Sequence record: PQ898602.1 | DNA: 64,000 nt | Direction: 5' to 3' (one strand) | Part shown: in pieces, positions 11,863-64,000 of the stretch | How the letters are laid out: each line of letters begins with the position of its first letter | Numbering within the stretch: the stretch's first letter is position 1 | The notes under the pieces: model-generated | Databases searched by the model: none | Seen by the model: only the letters and a program-made list of their open reading frames with translations | What the model was told of the DNA's origin: nothing | Program-made: the position numbers and the translations under genes

Positions 11863-12297
11863 ATGGTAAACATCCAGAAGTATCATGCTGCCGATTTGCC
11901 GCAGTTAATGGACAAGATTGTCAAGAATAGTATTGGAATGGACGATTACTTTGATCGTTTTTTCTTTCAACAGGAAACACAAAGTAACTACCCACCTTAC
12001 AATCTTGTGCAAGTCAGCAACGTGGAGTCTATACTAGAGATTGCACTCGCTGGATTCAAAAAAGAGGAAGTTAATGTCTACACCCAAGATGGTTCTCTGT
12101 TTGTTGAAGGACAGAAAGAGGCGAAAGAACCAAAAACTAACTACCTGCACAAAGGTTTGGCTCAACGGAGTTTTACACGTTCCTGGACCCTCAGTGACGA
12201 CACGGAAGTTCGATCAGTTACTTTTGAAGATGGGCTTTTGACAGTCAATCTCGGAAAAGTTGTTCCTGAACATCACCAGAGAAAGGACTATCTTTAA
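11863..12297 (+). CDS. hsp20: Small heat shock protein Hsp20
   Basis: NYPPYNL, EIALAGF, HKGLAQRSFTRSW, DGLL; aggag RBS. Confidence 0.95.
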   Translation: MVNIQKYHAADLPQLMDKIVKNSIGMDDYFDRFFFQQETQSNYPPYNLVQVSNVESILEIALAGFKKEEVNVYTQDGSLFVEGQKEAKEPKTNYLHKGLAQRSFTRSWTLSDDTEVRSVTFEDGLLTVNLGKVVPEHHQRKDYL

Positions 12298-13034: not shown

Positions 13035-14585
13035 ATGCCTTGGTTGAGTCTTGCGATATTGTTTCCAATCGCTGCCGCACTTGGTATTCCTCTCCTACCC
13101 GATAAAGGTGATGGAAAAGTAGTTCGGTGGTATGGATTATCAATTACACTAATCACATTTCTGATTACGATTGCGGGGTATCTGAATGGATATGACCCTT
13201 CGATCAGTGATCTTCAGATGTCAGAAAGAATCAGTTGGGTTCCTCAACTTGGACTTACTTGGTCCGTAGGTGCAGATGGATTGTCTATGCCTTTGATTCT
13301 TTTGACTAGTTTCATTACTAGTCTTGCTGCACTTGCTGCATGGCCTCTTCGGTTCAAACCGAAACTCTTCTACTTCCTTCTTCTCCTGATGGATGGTGGA
13401 CAGATTGCAGTTTTTGCGGTTCAAGATCTTATTCTTTTCTTCCTTTCATGGGAACTGGAACTTGTTCCTGTGTATCTAATGTTGGCGATCTGGGGTGGTA
13501 AGAAACGTCAGTATGCTGCGACTAAGTTCATCATTTACACCGCAGGTAGTTCTTTATTCATTCTTATTGCAGGACTTGCAATGGGATTCTGGGCATCCAA
13601 TGGTGCTCCGAACTTTGAATACACTTACCTGATGAATCAGGGTTTCCCGAAGAACTTCCAACTCTGGTGTTATGCAGGATTCTTGATTGCATTCGGTGTC
13701 AAACTTCCAATCGTTCCTTTGCATACTTGGTTGCCTGATGCTCATGGTGAAGCAACTGCACCAGTTCACATGTTGCTTGCGGGTATTCTTTTGAAGATGG
13801 GTGGATATGCACTCCTGCGATTCAACTGCCAACTTCTTCCAGAAGCACATAAAGTATTCGCACCAATTTTGATTGTTCTTGGTGTTGTCAATATCATCTA
13901 TGCTGCATTGACATCATTTGCACAAAGGAATCTCAAACGGAAGATTGCATATAGTTCAATCAGTCACATGGGATTTGTACTCATCGGTATCGGAAGTTAT
14001 AGTGCTCTCGGAACCACTGGTGCAATGCTTCAGATGGTCAGTCATGGTTTGATTGGTGCATCTCTATTCTTCCTAGTGGGTGCAACATATGACCGAACCC
14101 ATACTCTTCAACTCGATGAGATGGGTGGAGTTGGTCAGAACATGAAAATCATGTTTGCACTTTGGGTTATGTGTTCCATGGCATCCTTGGCACTGCCAGG
14201 TATGAGTGGATTTGTGAGTGAACTAATGGTCTTTGCTGGATTTGCAACTGACTCGGTATACGATCTTTCTTTCAGAATTATTGTTTGTTTGACTGCTGCA
14301 ATCGGTGTTATCCTGACTCCGATTTATCTCTTGTCTATGTTGCGTGAGATCTTCTATGGAACTCCTAACAAAGAACTCGTCGATCACACTAACTTGGTAG
14401 ATGCAGAACCCAGAGAAGTTTATATCATCAGTGCTCTATTGGTTCCGATTATTGCAATCGGATTGTATCCAAAGATCATGACCGATACCTTCCAGTCATC
14501 GATTGATTCACTAGTAAATCGAGACAAAGCGGTGTTGGTTAGGGAATCCCCATTCACGATCAGGTACACGCCACCAACTGCATAA
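13035..14585 (+). CDS. ndhD: NAD(P)H-quinone oxidoreductase (NDH-1) subunit 4, NdhD1/D2 clade
   Basis: [58 protein letters not shown]. Confidence 0.95.
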
Positions 14586-15063: not shown

Positions 15064-15307
15064 GAATATTCAAGTAATCGTACTTGTTAATGGTGGTACG
15101 ATTATTAGTAGAATTGACCAAGTTATGTCTGAACTTGGTGAACCAGACTGCAAACTTACTAAACCACGTCTTGCAGAAGGGATGTTGCCCTGGATGGGAC
15201 ATTTGACTGATCAGACTGATGATATTATGATTTCATCGGATAAGATCCTCACAATGGTTGATCCGAAACAATCACTACTTGATGCATATTTGACCGCTAT
15301 TCAATGA
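15056..15307 (+). CDS. Conserved hypothetical protein
   Basis: ELGEPDCKL..P...PW...ISSDKILT. Confidence 0.75.
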   Translation: MNENIQVIVLVNGGTIISRIDQVMSELGEPDCKLTKPRLAEGMLPWMGHLTDQTDDIMISSDKILTMVDPKQSLLDAYLTAIQ

Positions 15308-17802
15308 AGTTCTATACAAGTGTTTTCCAACTAGGTAATGACATCCTCGTCCGAGGTTATGAAAATGGAAAACATTTCACGAAACGTGAACCTTTTCAAC
15401 CAAGATTTTTTGTTCCCTCCAAACGAGAAAGTAAATTCAAGACCCTTGATGGTCAAGATGTAGAACCCATTCATCCTGGTACTATCCGAGAATGTAAAGA
15501 ATTCTTGGAAAAGTATGACGGGGTGAATGGTTTCAAAGTCTATGGGAATGATCGATTCGTATACCAATACATTGCTCAGAACTACCCTGAGGAAGAGATC
15601 AAGTTCGATATTTCTAAAATCAAAGTTATCACCATTGACATTGAGGTTGCGGCGGAGAGTGGATTCCCCGATGTATTCAACTGCGCTGAAGAACTTCTAC
15701 TGATTACTGTTCAGGATTACAATACCAAACAGATCATCACCTTTGGTTCTCGACCTGCAAACATCACACAGAAGAACGTCAAGTTTATCCAGTGTGCGGA
15801 CGAGTATGACCTTATTGGTAGATTCATGGATTGGTGGACTGCAAACCCGCCAGAGGTCGTCACAGGGTGGAATAACGAGTTGTATGACATGCCATACCTT
15901 GTGGGTCGTATGTCCCGCCTGATGGGTGAGAAGTTCGCCAAACGACTCTCTCCGTGGAATGTGGTGCGTGTTGATGAAGTCACCATCATGGGTCGCAAAC
16001 AACTCAGTTGTCGCATCGCTGGTGTGTCTATCCTGGACTACCTGGATCTGTATAAGAAGTCTCCTGCAACTCCAAACCAAGAGAGTTATCGATTGGATCA
16101 TATTGCATTCATGGAGTTGGGTCAGAACAAACTGGATCACTCTGAGTTCGATACTTTCCGAGAGTTCTACACTAACGATTGGCAAAAGTTCGTCGAATAT
16201 AACATCGTTGACGTGGAACTGGTTGACCGACTGGAGGATAAACTCAAACTGATTGACCTTTGTTTCACCCGTGCGTTTGACGCCAAGGTGAACTTCAATG
16301 ATATTGCATACCAGGTTCGTACTTGGGATGCGATTATCTACAATTATCTTCTCAACAGAAACATTGTGATTCCGCAAAAGGAACGCAATAGTAAGAGTGA
16401 GAAGTATGCGGGTGCGTTCGTGAAAGAACCTATCCCAGGATCTTATGAGTGGGTTGTGAACTTTGACCTTAACTCTCTATATCCCCACCTGATCATGCAG
16501 TACAACATCTCTCCAGAGACGTTGTTGGAACAAAAACACCCTAGTGCAACTGTTGATAAGATTCTCAAGAAAGAACTGACTTTCGAGATGTACAAGGACA
16601 ACGCAGTTTGTGCCAATGGTGCAATGTATCGCAAGGATGTCCGTGGGTTCCTACCAGAACTCATGGAGAAGATGTACAACGAACGTGTTATCTTCAAGAA
16701 GAAGATGATCGAGGCGAAGAAAGCCTATGAGAAGACTCCTACTAAAGCTTTGGAAAGAGAGATCTCTCGTTGTGACAACATTCAGATGGCGAAGAAGATT
16801 GCACTGAACTCTGCTTATGGTGCCATTGGTAACGAGTATTTCCGATACTACAAACTTGCAAACGCAGAAGCGATCACCCTATCTGGTCAGGTTTCGATTC
16901 AATGGATCGAAGCGAAGATGAATGAATATCTAAACAAAGTCTTGAAATCTGATGGAGTTGATTATGTTATTGCTATCGATACTGATTCTATCTACCTTAA
17001 TATGGGTCCTTTTGTTGACGCTGTATTCAAAGGGAGAGAGGCGTCTACTGAGGAGATTGTCAATTTCCTTGATAAGGTCAGTCACATGGAACTTGAAAAG
17101 TATATTGAAAGTTCTTACGAAGAGTTGGCCGACTACCTCAACGCCTACGAAAACAAAATGGTAATGAAACGCGAGAACATCGCGGAACGTGGTATCTGGA
17201 CTGGTAAAAAACGTTATATCCTTCGTGTGTGGGATAGTGAGGGTGTTCGTTATGAGAAACCCAAACTTAAGATGATGGGTATTGAAGCTATCAAGACCTC
17301 AACTCCTGCACCTTGTCGGAAATACATTAAAGATGCACTCGACATCATCATGACAAAGGAAGAGGATGATGTGATTGACTTCATCGAGAATGCTCGTAAA
17401 GAGTTTAAGAATCTTCAACCTGAAGAGATTGCATTCCCTCGTAGTGTATCTGAGATTAACAAGTGGATGTCTCGTACAGACATGTATAACAAGGGATGTC
17501 CGATTCACGTCCGTGGTGCTATCCTATATAATCATTACACTAAAAAAGCTGGACTTGATAAAAAGTATGCACCCATTCAAAGTGGTGAGAAGATCAAGTT
17601 CCTGTATTTGAAAGTGCCCAATCCTATTCAGGAGAATGTTCTCTCCTTTATCCAAGATTTTCCCCGAGAACTTGGGTATGAGAAATATGTGGATTATGAT
17701 GCTCAGTTTAATAAATCTTTTATTGAACCTATGAAGATCATTCTCAATGCAATTGGTTGGTCCGTAGAACGGAAAGTTAGTTTGGAGTCTTTCTTCGCAT
17801 GA
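15304..17802 (+). CDS. gp43: DNA polymerase gp43 (family B)
   Basis: DIE exonuclease, DLNSLYPH, K..LNSAYG, DTDS; no intein or intron. Confidence 0.98.
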   Translation: MKFYTSVFQLGNDILVRGYENGKHFTKREPFQPRFFVPSKRESKFKTLDGQDVEPIHPGTIRECKEFLEKYDGVNGFKVYGNDRFVYQYIAQNYPEEEIKFDISKIKVITIDIEVAAESGFPDVFNCAEELLLITVQDYNTKQIITFGSRPANITQKNVKFIQCADEYDLIGRFMDWWTANPPEVVTGWNNELYDMPYLVGRMSRLMGEKFAKRLSPWNVVRVDEVTIMGRKQLSCRIAGVSILDYLDLYKKSPATPNQESYRLDHIAFMELGQNKLDHSEFDTFREFYTNDWQKFVEYNIVDVELVDRLEDKLKLIDLCFTRAFDAKVNFNDIAYQVRTWDAIIYNYLLNRNIVIPQKERNSKSEKYAGAFVKEPIPGSYEWVVNFDLNSLYPHLIMQYNISPETLLEQKHPSATVDKILKKELTFEMYKDNAVCANGAMYRKDVRGFLPELMEKMYNERVIFKKKMIEAKKAYEKTPTKALEREISRCDNIQMAKKIALNSAYGAIGNEYFRYYKLANAEAITLSGQVSIQWIEAKMNEYLNKVLKSDGVDYVIAIDTDSIYLNMGPFVDAVFKGREASTEEIVNFLDKVSHMELEKYIESSYEELADYLNAYENKMVMKRENIAERGIWTGKKRYILRVWDSEGVRYEKPKLKMMGIEAIKTSTPAPCRKYIKDALDIIMTKEEDDVIDFIENARKEFKNLQPEEIAFPRSVSEINKWMSRTDMYNKGCPIHVRGAILYNHYTKKAGLDKKYAPIQSGEKIKFLYLKVPNPIQENVLSFIQDFPRELGYEKYVDYDAQFNKSFIEPMKIILNAIGWSVERKVSLESFFA

Positions 17803-57961: not shown

Positions 57962-58132
57962 ATGGACAAACACACCTATAATAATTGGGTGAAAGTTAAG
58001 GAAACCTTCGAGGCTTCTGGAAACACTAATAACATGTTTTATCAAAGGGCATGTGCCATAGTTGGAACTGGTAAAGATCCATTATCAAAATTTCTAGGAG
58101 ACAAGGAGGAACCCCATGATGAGTCCGTATGA
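57962..58132 (+). CDS. 56-aa conserved cyanophage hypothetical protein
   Basis: MDKHTYNNWVKVKETFEASGNT..MFY.RAC; TTGACA upstream near 57910. Confidence 0.7.
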   Translation: MDKHTYNNWVKVKETFEASGNTNNMFYQRACAIVGTGKDPLSKFLGDKEEPHDESV

Positions 58133-58319
58133 TGATGAGTCAGTTTCACGTACAGAAGTACAGGAGATGATTGATGCAGCAATTCGTCAACACAACCGCA
58201 ATGCTTCTATCATCAGTATGTGTGTCGGGTGGGTTGTTTTGGCTCTCTTCGCTGAGGGTCTTTTGAGGTTGATAGGTGTAATTCCGCCAATCTTCCCATG
58301 GCTGAACATTCACTTGTAG
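58116..58319 (+). CDS. Small single-TM hypothetical protein
   Basis: AIRQHNRNASIISM..GW..LALFAEGLLRL. Confidence 0.7.
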   Translation: MMSPYDDESVSRTEVQEMIDAAIRQHNRNASIISMCVGWVVLALFAEGLLRLIGVIPPIFPWLNIHL

Positions 58320-58483
58320 ACTGGATTTGGGTGGTTGTCATCGGATTATTCGGTGCAACCATGATTATTCAGGGGCATTTTATCTATCATGGTAAACATG
58401 GTTATTCCAGAAAAGACTATGATGACCAACAAAAAAAAGATCATGTTCGTAAACAAGTAGAAAGAGTTATCAAAGGTAAATGA
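58298..58483 (+). CDS. Small single-TM hypothetical protein
   Basis: TM then HGKHGY. Confidence 0.55.
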   Translation: MAEHSLVDWIWVVVIGLFGATMIIQGHFIYHGKHGYSRKDYDDQQKKDHVRKQVERVIKGK

Positions 58484-58629
58484 ACGAGGATCAAAAAAGA
58501 GAATTTTACAAATCACTCAGAGAAAGAGTTCATCAACTTAGAATGGGACATTTATTTGAAGAACCATGCCCACTCTATGAACCAGAGTGGGATTCAGATT
58601 GTCGTATGACTTACGATGATCATGAGTAA
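58480..58629 (+). CDS. 49-aa hypothetical protein
   Basis: ATGA-type coupling; HLFEEPCPLYEPEW. Confidence 0.6.
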   Translation: MNEDQKREFYKSLRERVHQLRMGHLFEEPCPLYEPEWDSDCRMTYDDHE

Positions 58630-58747
58630 TTCTGAAGCAATAGAACTGATTAATGCCATGGCTCAGATGCTATACATGATGGTTGCTTGGTTGTCTGGAA
58701 TATATCTTGGTTACATGATAGGTTTTAGAAACGGGAGTGGATCATGA
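58622..58747 (+). CDS. 41-aa single-TM peptide
   Basis: Chain of overlapping starts and stops. Confidence 0.5.
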   Translation: MSNSEAIELINAMAQMLYMMVAWLSGIYLGYMIGFRNGSGS

Positions 58748-58848
58748 AAGGAAACACAACTCTAGTATTGTATTCTGCGATAATTTTTGGTATAATTGCT
58801 TTGTTTGTTGTATGGGGCGTAACCCATGCATATTCACCACTATATTGA
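58744..58848 (+). CDS. 34-aa single-TM peptide
   Basis: ATGA coupling; FVVWGVTHAY. Confidence 0.55.
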   Translation: MKGNTTLVLYSAIIFGIIALFVVWGVTHAYSPLY

Positions 58849-58851
58849 ACA

Positions 58852-59496
58852 ATGAAGATCTTTATTGACACCGCACAGACCTCTGAAATCCATAGTGCAT
58901 TTCAGACTGGTCTAGTTGATGGTGTTACAACAAATCCATCTCTCATCATGAAGAGTGGTCGCGATCCTGAGGATGTGTATCAAGAACTGATTGAAGCAGG
59001 TATTCCTGATATCAGTATGGAGGTTGTCGGTACTGTTGGTGAGATGTATAATGAAGGTATCCGTCTAGCTGAAAAGTTTGGAGACCAAGCCACTATCAAG
59101 TTGCCTTGCACTCCTGATGGTTTGCAGGTTTGTCGTCATCTGACCGCAAAAGATATTCGTACTAATGTTACCCTTATCTTCTCTGCTTCTCAGGCTGTAC
59201 TTGCTGCAAAAGCTGGTGCAACTTACATTTCACCTTTTGTTGGTCGTCTTACCGATAATGGTTTTGATGGTCTTGAATTGATTCGTACTATCTACGAAAT
59301 CTATAAGAAGGACGGATGTCCTACCGAGATTCTTGCTGCATCTGTACGTAGTCCAGAAGTTGTTGCCCTTTGTTATCGTGAAGGTGCAGACATTTGTACT
59401 ATTCCCCCAGGTGTTTTCAACAAGATGTATGAAAGTGTCCTGACCCGTGAAGGACTTGCTATTTTCCAAAAAGACTGGGATTCTATCCAGAAGTGA
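58852..59496 (+). CDS. talC: Transaldolase (TalC family)
   Basis: MKIFIDTA, DGVTTNPSL, IKLP, NVTLIFS, SPFVGRL. Confidence 0.96.
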   Translation: MKIFIDTAQTSEIHSAFQTGLVDGVTTNPSLIMKSGRDPEDVYQELIEAGIPDISMEVVGTVGEMYNEGIRLAEKFGDQATIKLPCTPDGLQVCRHLTAKDIRTNVTLIFSASQAVLAAKAGATYISPFVGRLTDNGFDGLELIRTIYEIYKKDGCPTEILAASVRSPEVVALCYREGADICTIPPGVFNKMYESVLTREGLAIFQKDWDSIQK

Positions 59497-59505
59497 TGAC
59501 AACTT

Positions 59506-60183
59506 ATGAAAAAAACTATTCTTGCTATGATTGCAGCAGTTTCTCTGGGAACTCCTGTATTTGCTGATCCAATCACCAAAGATGAGTTCTTCACCCCTCA
59601 TGCTCAGGGGTGCATGTTGCTCCAAGAATGTACCGATCATGTTCAAGAACTTAAAACAGTTTCTGATCTCAACAAAAACGAGGAACTGGCTGATGTTGAT
59701 TACAGTATTGTTGCTGATGAGTTTAACTCTCTCGTCCGATCACTTAATAAGGTCGGAGCTAAAGTTTTTCTAGCAGATATGCGATACTTCCCAATCGGTC
59801 ATCGTGGTGTTTATCATACCGTAGGTAACAACTTCTTCTTGAATGTTGCCCATATGCATCGTCCTGGAGTGATGATGTCGGTAATGCGTCACGAAGGATG
59901 GCACGCTGCTCAAGATTGTATGGCAGGAACAATCAATAATAATTTCATTGCTATTATTCACAATCAAGAAGAAGTTCCTAAGATGTATCAAGCAATCGCA
60001 AAGAGTGCTTATGCATCGCAACCACACGCTATTCCCTGGGAGAAAGAGGCATACTGGGCAGGTCACACTGAGGGTATGACTCAGGCGGCACTTGAGTCAT
60101 GTGCTGCTGGTACCATGTGGACTGATTATGAACCAACACCTATGACACGCGAATGGCTTGAAGAAAACGGATACATTAAATAA
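59506..60183 (+). CDS. Exported protein with HExxH zinc-metallopeptidase-like motif
   Basis: Signal peptide; RHEGWHAAQDC; EKEA. Confidence 0.65.
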   Translation: MKKTILAMIAAVSLGTPVFADPITKDEFFTPHAQGCMLLQECTDHVQELKTVSDLNKNEELADVDYSIVADEFNSLVRSLNKVGAKVFLADMRYFPIGHRGVYHTVGNNFFLNVAHMHRPGVMMSVMRHEGWHAAQDCMAGTINNNFIAIIHNQEEVPKMYQAIAKSAYASQPHAIPWEKEAYWAGHTEGMTQAALESCAAGTMWTDYEPTPMTREWLEENGYIK

Positions 60184-60203
60184 GACAGACGAGGAAAGAA
60201 ACC

Positions 60204-60380
60204 ATGTCACAATTCTGCTTCACCGATCTCTCTGATGAACAACGCCGATTGTTAATCGACGCAGTATGGATGAGACAAAGATCCTATATTGCTGGAGATC
60301 GAATGTTCAGAGAGTATGGGAAGATGTTAGATGATTTGAGAATTGGTTTTGAAGATTACGTTCCATGTCAATACAGATGA
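60204..60380 (+). CDS. 58-aa hypothetical protein
   Basis: gagga RBS; ATGA coupling to zwf. Confidence 0.6.
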   Translation: MSQFCFTDLSDEQRRLLIDAVWMRQRSYIAGDRMFREYGKMLDDLRIGFEDYVPCQYR

Positions 60381-61714
60381 AAGCTATTGTAATTTTCGGT
60401 GCAACAGGAGATCTCTGTAAGAGAAAACTTATCCCTGCACTTCATGAATTGTTCCAAAGAAACCTACTTCCAGAAAACTTTCTAATTGTAGGATCTTCTC
60501 GGAGAGACCCAGGTACCAAGTCCTGGACTGATAGCCTCGGGGATTACCCCGAGGATTTTTTGCAAATGATGGACTATGTGTCCACTGATCTGGACAACCC
60601 AGAATCACTACATCATCTGGATTATCTAAAGGAGTACGATACAACTTACTTCCTTTCAGTTCCACCAGAGAGGTATGCAAATGCAATTGTCAACCTTAAA
60701 GCATCGGGTGCTCTCGATGATCCCGAAAGGTCCAGATTGGTTATCGAAAAACCCTTTGGGCACGATTATAAATCTGCTGATAATCTACAGTCAGTGGTGG
60801 GCAGACATTTACGCGAGAAACAAGTATATCGCATTGACCATTATCTTGGTAAAGATACTGTCAATAACATCCTTGCTACTCGTTTCAGTAATATTCTTCT
60901 TGAACCACTTTGGAATCGTCAGTACATAGAAGAAGTTCAAGTCTTTGCAACTGAAACTATCGGTTGTGAAGGTCGTGCTCAATACTACGAAACTTCTGGT
61001 GCAGTGAGGGACATGTTGCAGAATCATCTGCTTCAAGTCCTTGCGTTGATTGCAATGGAACCTCCTTGTAAGAACGATGCAAAGGAGATTCGCAGAGAGA
61101 AAACTAAAGTTCTTGCTGCGACCAGACTTGGTGATGAAATGGTCCTTGGTCAATATCAATCGTATAGAGACGAGGATGGTGTTGACGAGAATAGTACCAC
61201 TCCAACATTTGTTGCTGGTAATCTATTCATTGACAACTGGAGATGGGAGGGTGTTCCTTTCCACTTCATGACTGGTAAGAAAATGCCAGTATCTTGTGTT
61301 GAGGTTGTGGTTAAATTTAAGTCACCACCGCAAACACTATTTGAAGGTCATGAGTGTAATGACAGAATCGTAATGCGATTCCAACCTGATCCTCACTTGG
61401 ATATGAGAATCGATATCAAGTCTCCTGGACTTGACGATAGAGTTGAACCTGCAACACTGCAGTATCACTATCCAAAAGATAGAGCTGTAGATGGTTATGT
61501 TCGACTTCTGAATGATGCAATTACTGGTGATCAATCACACTTCGTTCATTCTGATGAAGTGTTAGAATCTTGGAGAATTGTTGATGATCTCCTTTGTACT
61601 GGAGATCAATGTCGTATCAGAACCAAACCTTATATCTATCATGATGGACTATGGGGACCTTGGTACAAACTAGACCAAATCACTAACTGGGACTTTCCAC
61701 TGAGGTTAAATTAG
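60377..61714 (+). CDS. zwf: Glucose-6-phosphate dehydrogenase
   Basis: IFGATGDL, IEKPFG, RIDHYLGK, RDMLQNHL. Confidence 0.97.
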   Translation: MKAIVIFGATGDLCKRKLIPALHELFQRNLLPENFLIVGSSRRDPGTKSWTDSLGDYPEDFLQMMDYVSTDLDNPESLHHLDYLKEYDTTYFLSVPPERYANAIVNLKASGALDDPERSRLVIEKPFGHDYKSADNLQSVVGRHLREKQVYRIDHYLGKDTVNNILATRFSNILLEPLWNRQYIEEVQVFATETIGCEGRAQYYETSGAVRDMLQNHLLQVLALIAMEPPCKNDAKEIRREKTKVLAATRLGDEMVLGQYQSYRDEDGVDENSTTPTFVAGNLFIDNWRWEGVPFHFMTGKKMPVSCVEVVVKFKSPPQTLFEGHECNDRIVMRFQPDPHLDMRIDIKSPGLDDRVEPATLQYHYPKDRAVDGYVRLLNDAITGDQSHFVHSDEVLESWRIVDDLLCTGDQCRIRTKPYIYHDGLWGPWYKLDQITNWDFPLRLN

Positions 61715-61717
61715 GAA

Positions 61718-61801
61718 ATGGAAACATTATTTGTATTTCTTTTCATTACCTTGCTAACTACTAGTATGCATCTAACATGGCCAGGTAGATACCGAGGGTA
61801 A
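61718..61801 (+). CDS. 27-aa TM peptide ending MHLTWPGRYRG
   Basis: agga RBS; fills gap. Confidence 0.55.
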   Translation: METLFVFLFITLLTTSMHLTWPGRYRG

Positions 61802-61802
61802 C

Positions 61803-62039
61803 ATGAAAAAACAATCCGAGGAAGAACGCAAAAAGAAAATAGAGGAGATTGCTAGACACATGCATCCGCATGATGACGAACCTGATCCTACTGCATATAT
61901 GGGGAACTATAACTTTCCTCAGATGCTTTTTGCTTTCTGCCTTGGATTTGTGACTATGTTTGTCTTATCAGTAAATGAGATAAACAATTTCAAAGGATGT
62001 CCTTTACCAGAATATTTTATCAACGAAGGAAAACAATGA
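61803..62039 (+). CDS. Small membrane hypothetical protein
   Basis: HPHDDEPDP..YMG.YNFPQMLFAFCLG. Confidence 0.7.
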   Translation: MKKQSEEERKKKIEEIARHMHPHDDEPDPTAYMGNYNFPQMLFAFCLGFVTMFVLSVNEINNFKGCPLPEYFINEGKQ

Positions 62040-63079
62040 AAGTAGGACTAATCGGACTCGGACGGATGGGCGAAGGAATGTCCCGTCGAATGATGGACCG
62101 AGGAAACATCGAAGTTTATGGTTACAGACGAAACTATGACAAGGCACAAGAAGCAGCAAAGAGTGGGTATATTACTGCAGCTGCAGATTCTCTGGAAAGC
62201 CTTGTTCAAGTAGTCAAAGACGGCGGATCTGCGGGTCAAGTACCTGGAATCTTCCAACTTGTTATCCCCGCAGAACTCGTACAGGAGACTATCAATGAGT
62301 TATTACCATTACTTAGTGATGGAGATATTGTTATTGATCATGGCAATTCCAATTTTAAGGACTCGCGCCGCAGAGCAGAGTCCCTGGAGAAATTGGGCAT
62401 CCAATATATTGATTGTGGTACTAGTGGTGGTGTCTACGGCTTGGAGCGTGGATACTGTCTTATGGTTGGAGGCAGAGATCAAGCAGTCGGCGTATGCCGC
62501 CCTCTATTCGACGCCCTCGCACCAGGCATCAGTGCTGCCCCACGAACAAGTGACAGAGACAACTTCACTTGGTACCCAGAAGAATTTGGATGGATTCATG
62601 CAGGCGCCCCAGGTGCAGGTCACTTCGTGAAGATGGTTCACAATGGAATCGAATACGGAATTATGCAAGCATACGCCGAAGGATTTAATATCCTGCATGA
62701 GGCTAATGCTGGGTCGAAGTACGTTAAAGAGGGTGATGCAGAAGTCGCTCCAATGGATTGCCCAGAAGACTATTGTTATGACATTAACGTTGCTAAAGTG
62801 GCTGAGTGTTGGCGCCGCGGTAGTGTTGTTGGTTCTTGGTTACTTGACCTTACTGCGGATGTATTACGCCGCGACCGAGAGCTTGATGCTTTCGCTGGGG
62901 GTGTCTCCGATTCTGGCGAGGGACGTTGGACTGTTCACGCTGCTGTGGACCTTGGGGTACCCTCTCCTGTCATCAGTAGTGCATTGTGGTCGCGTTTTGA
63001 GTCGCGCCGTCTTGGTGCTTTCGCAGCCAAGGTTCTAAATGGTATGCGTGCTATGTTTGGAGGACATGATGTCCGATAG
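62036..63079 (+). CDS. gnd: 6-phosphogluconate dehydrogenase (short Gnd family)
   Basis: GLIGLGRMG, IDHGNS, DCGTSGG, KMVHNGIEYG. Confidence 0.96.
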   Translation: MKVGLIGLGRMGEGMSRRMMDRGNIEVYGYRRNYDKAQEAAKSGYITAAADSLESLVQVVKDGGSAGQVPGIFQLVIPAELVQETINELLPLLSDGDIVIDHGNSNFKDSRRRAESLEKLGIQYIDCGTSGGVYGLERGYCLMVGGRDQAVGVCRPLFDALAPGISAAPRTSDRDNFTWYPEEFGWIHAGAPGAGHFVKMVHNGIEYGIMQAYAEGFNILHEANAGSKYVKEGDAEVAPMDCPEDYCYDINVAKVAECWRRGSVVGSWLLDLTADVLRRDRELDAFAGGVSDSGEGRWTVHAAVDLGVPSPVISSALWSRFESRRLGAFAAKVLNGMRAMFGGHDVR

Positions 63080-63158
63080 CACTCATTGGATCTGCACAAA
63101 GTGTGGAGGCAAAGGATGTGAACATTGTAATGAAACAGGATGGGAACCTAAAAAATGA
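63069..63158 (+). CDS. 29-aa CxxCxGxG zinc-ribbon micro-protein
   Basis: CTKCGGKGCEHCNETG; coupled to both neighbours. Confidence 0.55.
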   Translation: MSDSTHWICTKCGGKGCEHCNETGWEPKK

Positions 63159-63628
63159 GTATTTGCATTGGAATGAATACGTTGTTAGCAACTGCTGCAA
63201 CAATGATTGTTGGTGAAGTGACTCCCGAATCAGTTAGAACTTACGTTTCACTTAACGCTGATCCTTGGGACAATAATGCACAAATAGACTTTGAGGAACC
63301 AATGGGTTCTTTTGGTCTTGAATATGATATTCATACAAATGTCAGATTGTTTGCAGAGCATCTTTCGTCACCGATGCAATGTAATGATCACCCAGGAGTA
63401 AATCATGCTGGAGTTAAACTTCTCGCACCAATCAATGACTTTACTCTTTACTCTGGGATCAGCATTAACAATTCTGATTTTGATAGTAATGATCGGTTTG
63501 AAGGACCACTGGTATCGTTAGGTGTGGAATATGGTGATGATTTTAAAGTCTATGCCGAACATCTTGCCAGTGTAAAATCAATTGAAGATGGTAGAACATC
63601 TTTCGGATTCAAGGTATTTTTCAAATGA
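63155..63628 (+). CDS. Putative small outer-membrane beta-barrel protein
   Basis: Alternating beta pattern, internal repeat G.EY....V.L.AEHL.S, aromatic C-terminus GFKVFFK. Confidence 0.5.
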   Translation: MSICIGMNTLLATAATMIVGEVTPESVRTYVSLNADPWDNNAQIDFEEPMGSFGLEYDIHTNVRLFAEHLSSPMQCNDHPGVNHAGVKLLAPINDFTLYSGISINNSDFDSNDRFEGPLVSLGVEYGDDFKVYAEHLASVKSIEDGRTSFGFKVFFK

Positions 63629-63759
63629 TTCTAGCAAACGTTCTTTTATATGCATGTGTTCCATTTTGTCTAGTGACATTATTCTTTGGAACTAAAGGTG
63701 GTTACTATGATACTGATAAGTATGATGGTGATGGTACTGCACATAAGGTATTAAAATGA
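63625..63759 (+). CDS. ndhP: NDH-1L small subunit NdhP homolog (44 aa)
   Basis: Single TM then FFGTKGGYYDTDKYDGDGTAH, matching the NdhP tail FFG..GFYDTD.Y.G.G.AH. Confidence 0.85.
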   Translation: MILANVLLYACVPFCLVTLFFGTKGGYYDTDKYDGDGTAHKVLK

Positions 63760-63845
63760 ACCACGAACAAACACAACAGAATCACCCCGAATCGGAACAA
63801 CAACCACATCCAGAATCAGAACAACACGGGCACGAAGAGTCATGA
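63756..63845 (+). CDS. 29-aa His/Glu/Gln-rich peptide with HPESEQ repeat
   Basis: ATGA coupling at both ends. Confidence 0.4.
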   Translation: MNHEQTQQNHPESEQQPHPESEQHGHEES

Positions 63846-64000
63846 TTCACCACGTCCAATTGTTTGTTAGACATACTATGGAAAGTCCATGGGGGATAGG
63901 TATCCTGTCCCTCGCATTGGTAGTGGTTCCTATCATTGGGATGGATTTAGTTCATAAGTATGGTTGGGAACATTGGGAACCATTTAATAAACCATTTGAC
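63842..64000 (+). CDS. Small membrane protein, 3'-truncated by window edge
   Basis: MIHHVQLFVRHTM..PW..GILSL.LV.VPIIG..LVHKYGWEHW. Confidence 0.65.
   Translation, partial: MIHHVQLFVRHTMESPWGIGILSLALVVVPIIGMDLVHKYGWEHWEPFNKPFD

Follow-up and report, generated by a model that had tools for sequence, protein, structure and literature searches.

Genes at the ndhP and ndhD loci

The stretch of DNA analysed here (the window; 64,000 nucleotides) belongs, with 100% identity, to the 244 kb genome of Synechococcus phage S-SCSM2R (PQ898602.1), whose host is WH7803; window coordinates were obtained by subtracting 124000 from those of the record. The following features, all on the plus strand, are relevant to the analysis:

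11863-12297, plus strand: small heat-shock protein (sHsp) gene, bounding on the left the sHsp-DNA polymerase slot in which ndhD lies
13035-14585, plus strand: ndhD, complete, encoding 516 aa (GenBank SSCSM2R_157)
15304-17802, plus strand: T4-type DNA polymerase gene, the right edge of the ndhD slot
60377-61714, plus strand: zwf, glucose-6-phosphate dehydrogenase (GenBank SSCSM2R_222), in the same plus-strand pentose-phosphate cluster as gnd
62093-63079, plus strand: gnd, 6-phosphogluconate dehydrogenase, the gene that usually precedes ndhP in phages
63155-63628, plus strand: 157-aa open reading frame (ORF), the stop of which overlaps the ndhP start (ATGA)
63625-63759, plus strand: ndhP, 44 codons with an ATG start and a TGA stop (GenBank SSCSM2R_226)

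A preliminary description of the window had noted a 44-aa ORF with an NdhP-like tail and a complete ndhD. Both lie exactly where it placed them: the ORF at 63625-63759 on the plus strand matches NdhP chains, and the full-length ndhD ORF scores above the cutoff of the NF002713 family model. The accompanying statement that ndhP is unannotated is true of the ORF track from which that description was made, whereas GenBank names SSCSM2R_226 'NdhP protein'. The genome paper of 2025 also lists ndhP and ndhD among 12 photosynthesis genes of S-SCSM2R (PMC12801897). Both genes are already annotated and published, and they are ordinary for a cyanomyovirus.

The 157-aa ORF upstream of ndhP has no family annotation. 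It has 131 metagenomic relatives and also stands beside ndhP in S-TIM5, where ndhP, annotated as 'hypothetical', occupies the same position after it. An AlphaFold2 model (pLDDT 82.6) displays an N-terminal signal or anchor helix and an 8-stranded beta-barrel, and its Foldseek matches, with E values from 2e-5 to 1e-3, were OmpA-TM and designed 8-strand barrels; the product is thus predicted to combine a signal/anchor helix with an OmpA-TM-like beta-barrel. A small Cys-rich ORF (63039-63158, plus strand) lies between gnd and the 157-aa ORF. In a metagenomic relative (protein P0001), ndhP directly follows the first 11 residues of this Cys-rich ORF, and the same in-frame lead-in to ndhP is found in syn9 and S-RSM4; accordingly, the Cys-rich and beta-barrel ORFs of S-SCSM2R seem to have been inserted between gnd and ndhP.

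Downstream, the chain of ATGA overlaps runs from the 157-aa ORF through ndhP and a 29-aa plus-strand ORF (63756-63845) to an ORF beginning at 63842; GenBank has instead a minus-strand 30-aa ORF (SSCSM2R_227, 63751-63843). In a close relative (L005), the homologue of the ORF from 63842 begins right after ndhP, and the stretch of ~86 bp that follows ndhP in the window appears to be missing. A scan of positions 58000-64000 for sigma-70 promoters and terminators yielded counts no higher than in shuffled sequence and was uninformative with respect to the transcription unit. Beyond the window end (L001:6998-7277; record 188097-188376), a coding sequence annotated as 'VapB46 antitoxin' and a tRNA-Pro gene overlap on one strand; probably only one of these annotations is genuine.

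Identity and sequence types of phage NdhP

In a search against solved structures, the 44-aa ORF matched the NdhP chains of Thermosynechococcus NDH-1L (6khi_P, E 3.7e-9; 6hum_P, E 3.3e-8), with the alignment spanning ORF residues 7-40 and thus including the entire conserved tail. The plant proteins PnsB4/NDF6 gave weak matches that ranked below the NdhP chains. The profile search for NdhP proposed in the preliminary description gave a mixed outcome. Pfam and NCBIfam scans returned no usable match, which we do not count against the assignment because neither library apparently contains an NdhP model. The phage family phrog_2173, annotated as 'unknown function', matched the ORF from end to end (E 1.2e-18). 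The protein collection contained 82 homologues of 39-74 aa.

The ORF product has a simple architecture, with a single N-terminal hydrophobic helix followed by a conserved Gly/Tyr/Asp-rich tail closing with Ala-His. Residues 1-22 are strongly hydrophobic, the mean Kyte-Doolittle value being 2.2 over residues 1-19 and below 0 in the tail. An alignment of 17 phage and host sequences contains 11 invariant columns (F14, G26, Y27, Y28, D31, Y33, D34, G35, G37, A39, and H40), 10 of which fall in the tail. Judged by its sequence, the product of 63625-63759 is NdhP.

Phage NdhP proteins come in several types. The S-SCSM2R copy belongs to type A, which differs from host NdhP in two ways: the G-x-G turn has Asp where hosts have Asn, and four additional C-terminal residues, KVLK, follow the His at which the host proteins end. 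This extension is conserved in phage type A and absent from 66 of the 70 host NdhP sequences. Type B, the commonest among isolates, carries a two-residue insertion, lacks the C-terminal extension, and is encoded between gnd and zwf, whereas a third type ends with ...CAHDVKR, as in P-SSM2. A Cys-for-Thr replacement three residues before the C-terminal His was considered as a marker linked to ndhD and rejected, being present also in ndhD-less loci of the third type.

The four host exceptions that do carry the extension are found on the chromosome of Synechococcus MIT S9503 (L151:3001-3132) and in three single-cell genomes (L152-L154). All four copies are phage-type, with both the Asp and the four-residue extension, which suggests either phage-to-host transfer or a second paralogue. 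One of the single-cell loci (L154) also contains repeated short ORFs starting MSEEQLKAFLEKVK.

Distribution of ndhP in cyanophages

The first reports of phage ndhP and ndhD were probably those of Nowaczyk and of Sharon in 2011, as cited in reviews (PMC10452541, PMC6596454). A tblastn search of the phage collection with the 44-aa protein recovered only the gene itself or N-terminal fragments, a misleading outcome explained by the low-complexity filter, which masks the conserved NdhP tail. The survey was therefore based on DNA blastn, degenerate DNA patterns, and an alignment-built HMM run on six-frame translations.

At least 477 ndhP stretches were found in IMG/VR. By blastn, type B ndhP DNA matches at least 174 phage records, and in the records listed it lies at gnd/zwf or beside gnd. 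The T4-type polymerase is common to ~462 Synechococcus, Cyanophage, and Prochlorococcus records. The proportion of T4-like cyanophage records with ndhP-like sequence is ~40%, an approximate figure given the redundancy of the records, the limited sensitivity of blastn, and the fact that an intact ORF was checked in 6 of the 174 matches; nearly all of these records are without ndhD. Intact NdhP ORFs of 42-43 aa were recovered with the HMM from syn9, S-SM1, S-RIM2, S-RSM4, S-8S56, and S-SCSM1, and intact ndhP ORFs are also present in P-SSM2, P-TIM68, and S-WAM1. Type A or type C genes are found in metaG-MbCM1, P-TIM68 (where the gene is annotated), S-WAM1, P-SSM2, and P-SSM5; those of metaG-MbCM1, S-WAM1, and P-SSM2 are either unannotated or labelled 'hypothetical'.

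The order gnd-ndhP-zwf recurs in S-TIM5, S-8S53, syn9, S-SM1, S-RSM4, S-SCSM1, and one metagenomic contig (L103), and a plastoquinol oxidase (PTOX) gene is often located near phage ndhP and the pentose-phosphate genes. Intact and unannotated ndhP genes sit between gnd and zwf in S-8S53 (L271:35053-35196, minus strand), S-8S56, S-RSM4, and S-SCSM1. In syn9 and S-SM1, over-long zwf calls beginning immediately behind gnd cover the gene, and in S-RIM2 it is found downstream of gnd amid hypothetical ORFs.

According to a review, NdhP homologues occur 'in some cyanophages' (PMC6596454), and the genome paper states that ndhP had previously been seen only in P-TIM68 (PMC12801897). The latter is an under-count: ndhP is not rare in cyanophages, including many classic isolates, and in most cases stands unannotated between gnd and zwf.

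Identity, conservation, and distribution of NdhD

The ndhD product exceeds the NF002713 cutoff of 827 bits with a score of 951.8 and matches PF00361 with E 1.6e-64. It is far closer to the NdhD1 chain 6hum_D (758 bits) than to the NdhD3 chain 6tjv_D (293 bits), which places it with the NDH-1L (NdhD1) type rather than with the NdhD3/4 type of CO2 uptake. On these scores, 13035-14585 encodes a complete NdhD1-type, antiporter-like NDH-1 subunit.

The functional core of the protein is preserved. In 64 phage-type and 57 host sequences alike, the proton-channel residues E140, K223, K254, and E396 do not vary, and H230 is kept in 63 of the 64 phage-type sequences; from what is known of complex I, these positions would belong to TM5, 7, 8, and 12. 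The loop lysines K156 and K164 are likewise present without exception in the phage (64) and host (57) proteins, and 44 of the 64 phage sequences also have Lys at the adjacent position 157; Lys166 of Synechocystis NdhD1 can be placed only approximately, within the K156-K164 loop. In a neighbour-joining tree, the phage sequences group in a single clade that excludes the host sequences. The copies in this clade are 503-520 aa long and 83-100% identical to the window protein. Fixed differences between phage and host NdhD are confined to five positions, all of them conservative, and hence nothing points to a remodelled interface.

In addition to S-SCSM2R, ndhD was found in two other isolates, S-8S53 and S-8S56, and at 67 IMG/VR loci, most of which have it in the sHsp-DNA polymerase slot, as in S-SCSM2R. 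In four other IMG/VR loci (L028, L029, L030, and L033), an ndhP of the third type comes directly after the small heat-shock gene. In L028 and L029, with the DNA polymerase gene following, it occupies the slot taken by ndhD in S-SCSM2R. The genome paper presents the S-SCSM2R gene as the 'first ndhD in a cyanophage' (PMC12801897). Given the S-8S53 and S-8S56 genes, the IMG/VR loci, and metagenomic phage ndhD reported already in 2011, as noted in a review (PMC10452541), this too is an under-count, and S-SCSM2R is not the first sighting of the gene.

Phages retain both genes under strong purifying selection. Comparison of 45 distinct phage copies of ndhD with the window copy gave dN/dS values of 0.02-0.10. 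For 36 distinct type A ndhP genes, the overall pN/pS is 0.23, and the helix and the tail taken separately give 0.39 and 0.055, respectively.

Proposed role of the phage-encoded subunits

NDH-1L passes ferredoxin- or NADPH-derived electrons to plastoquinone, for both cyclic and respiratory flow. The role assigned to NdhP in the preliminary description, at the NdhD1/NdhF1 end of this complex, is well founded (PMC4131877, PMC6992706, PMC11794437). NdhP is exclusive to NDH-1L and required for the stability of that complex; its place is in the distal NdhD1/NdhF1 region, and its C-terminus faces the cytoplasm (PMC4131877). Cryo-EM has further shown NdhD sandwiched by NdhP and NdhQ, both of which also touch NdhF (PMC6992706), and the two small subunits stabilise the NdhD1-NdhB junction, along with an NdhF1-NdhD1 salt bridge (PMC11794437).

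The explanation that we consider reasonably probable is that this T4-like cyanophage carries both genes as auxiliary metabolic genes of host origin, which have separate histories and feed one host complex. ndhP would be of long standing among cyanomyoviruses and widespread in them, with its usual place between gnd and zwf, and ndhD a rarer gene, restricted to a single phage clade and usually found between the small heat-shock and DNA polymerase genes. During infection, phage NdhP and NdhD would enter the thylakoid membrane of the host and be assembled onto its NDH-1M core alongside host-encoded NdhF1 and NdhQ, so that the NDH-1L pool is kept or enlarged; the resulting ATP would be available alongside reductant from the phage pentose-phosphate enzymes (zwf, gnd, and talC). 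A bias of host NDH-1 toward cyclic or respiratory flow, as put forward in the preliminary description, is a plausible hypothesis. The measurements reported in the genome paper are of photosystem II parameters (fluorescence) only (PMC12801897).

The preliminary description went further and treated the two genes as a matched pair making up a distal module of NDH-1L. In its full form, this explanation holds that phage NdhD and NdhP are co-adapted, work only together, and replace the distal unit of the host, drawing NDH-1M cores from the CO2-uptake form NDH-1MS to NDH-1L. We regard it as unlikely, although several observations are in its favour. NdhP touches NdhD1 directly (PMC6992706, PMC11794437), and the co-occurrence survey suggested in the preliminary description showed that every assessable ndhD-bearing genome has ndhP: S-SCSM2R, S-8S53, S-8S56, two uncultivated viral genomes (UViGs) of 239 and 250 kb (L139 with L013 and L098 with L258), and contigs L102-L104. 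These represent three lineages and both of the main NdhP types, ndhD being paired with type A in S-SCSM2R and the UViGs and with type B in S-8S53, S-8S56, and L102-L104. In L102-L104, where the gene order is regA-sHsp-ndhD-(216-aa ORF)-...-gnd-ndhP-zwf, ndhD and ndhP share a strand and are separated by 2.2 kb, the only case of physical linkage between the two genes.

However, with a base rate of ~0.4 for ndhP and about three independent lineages, the universal co-occurrence is not significant (chance p ~0.06). ndhP is widespread without ndhD, and in S-SCSM2R the two genes are 50.6 kb apart in separate gene clusters. Antiporter-like sequence was found at one place only in PQ898602.1, with no second such gene, which implies that the phage has no ndhF. 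The distal module is therefore incomplete and relies on host NdhF1, and also on host NdhQ unless there is an undetected phage copy. Nor do the proteins bear marks of co-adaptation: NdhD displays only the five conservative fixed changes, it is accompanied by two divergent types of NdhP, and the Cys variant of NdhP is present in ndhD-less loci too. On the favoured explanation, the phage would provide two NDH-1L subunits that touch each other rather than a module that is co-adapted or works by itself.

A variant to which we give slightly less credence still is that phage NdhD needs phage NdhP to dock on the host NDH-1M core. Such a docking dependence would explain the absence, among those assessed, of any ndhD-bearing genome without ndhP. 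If true, the recurrent PTOX-gnd-ndhP-zwf arrangement, to which ndhD was added in one lineage, would mark a phage-encoded route by which pentose-phosphate reductant is burnt through a phage/host hybrid NDH-1L for ATP.

Interference with the host complex appears very unlikely. Here, one or both phage subunits would poison NDH-1 assembly through the short termini of NdhD or the extended C-terminus of NdhP. Phage NdhD does lack the terminal extensions of the host protein, and the type A extension, conserved in phages and missing from nearly all host sequences, is located at the cytoplasmic, complex-facing end of NdhP (PMC4131877). Yet the catalytic residues and those of the salt-bridge region are all invariant, dN/dS is as low as in a working enzyme subunit, type B phage NdhP has no extension, and NdhP with a C-terminal GFP fusion was still assembled into NDH-1L (PMC4131877). 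The notion that the two genes are neutral passengers, recently captured from hosts and without a role in infection, is effectively refuted by the monophyly of phage NdhD (83-100% identity within the clade and at most 80% to hosts) and by the wide, syntenic distribution of both genes across many phage contigs under purifying selection.

Together, the two under-counts in the literature shift the question from a matched pair in one phage to why many cyanomyoviruses link NdhP to pentose-phosphate genes. The photosynthetic and respiratory subunits of which phages carry copies reveal the host complexes that set limits to phage production in the main primary producers of the ocean.

Comparison with host and phage homologues

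S-SCSM2R NdhP resembles the NdhP of Thermosynechococcus and Synechocystis (sml0013) in length, in its one N-terminal transmembrane helix, and in the conserved tail, and it has its type A ending in common with S-WAM1. The arrangement of its locus departs from the gnd-ndhP-zwf order of other phages in that two ORFs separate gnd from ndhP and zwf lies upstream. The phage NdhD is 77-80% identical to NdhD1 of marine Synechococcus and Prochlorococcus and keeps all of the channel residues. At 516 aa, it is 15-48 residues shorter than marine host NdhD1 proteins of 531-564 aa (the closest host proteins listed span 527-564 aa), and it is without both the N- and the C-terminal extension of marine host NdhD1. 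The proteins of S-8S53, S-8S56, and the 67 IMG/VR loci belong to the same phage clade as the window protein, although ndhD of S-8S53, unlike that of S-SCSM2R, is situated near thyX and psbD, outside the sHsp-DNA polymerase slot.
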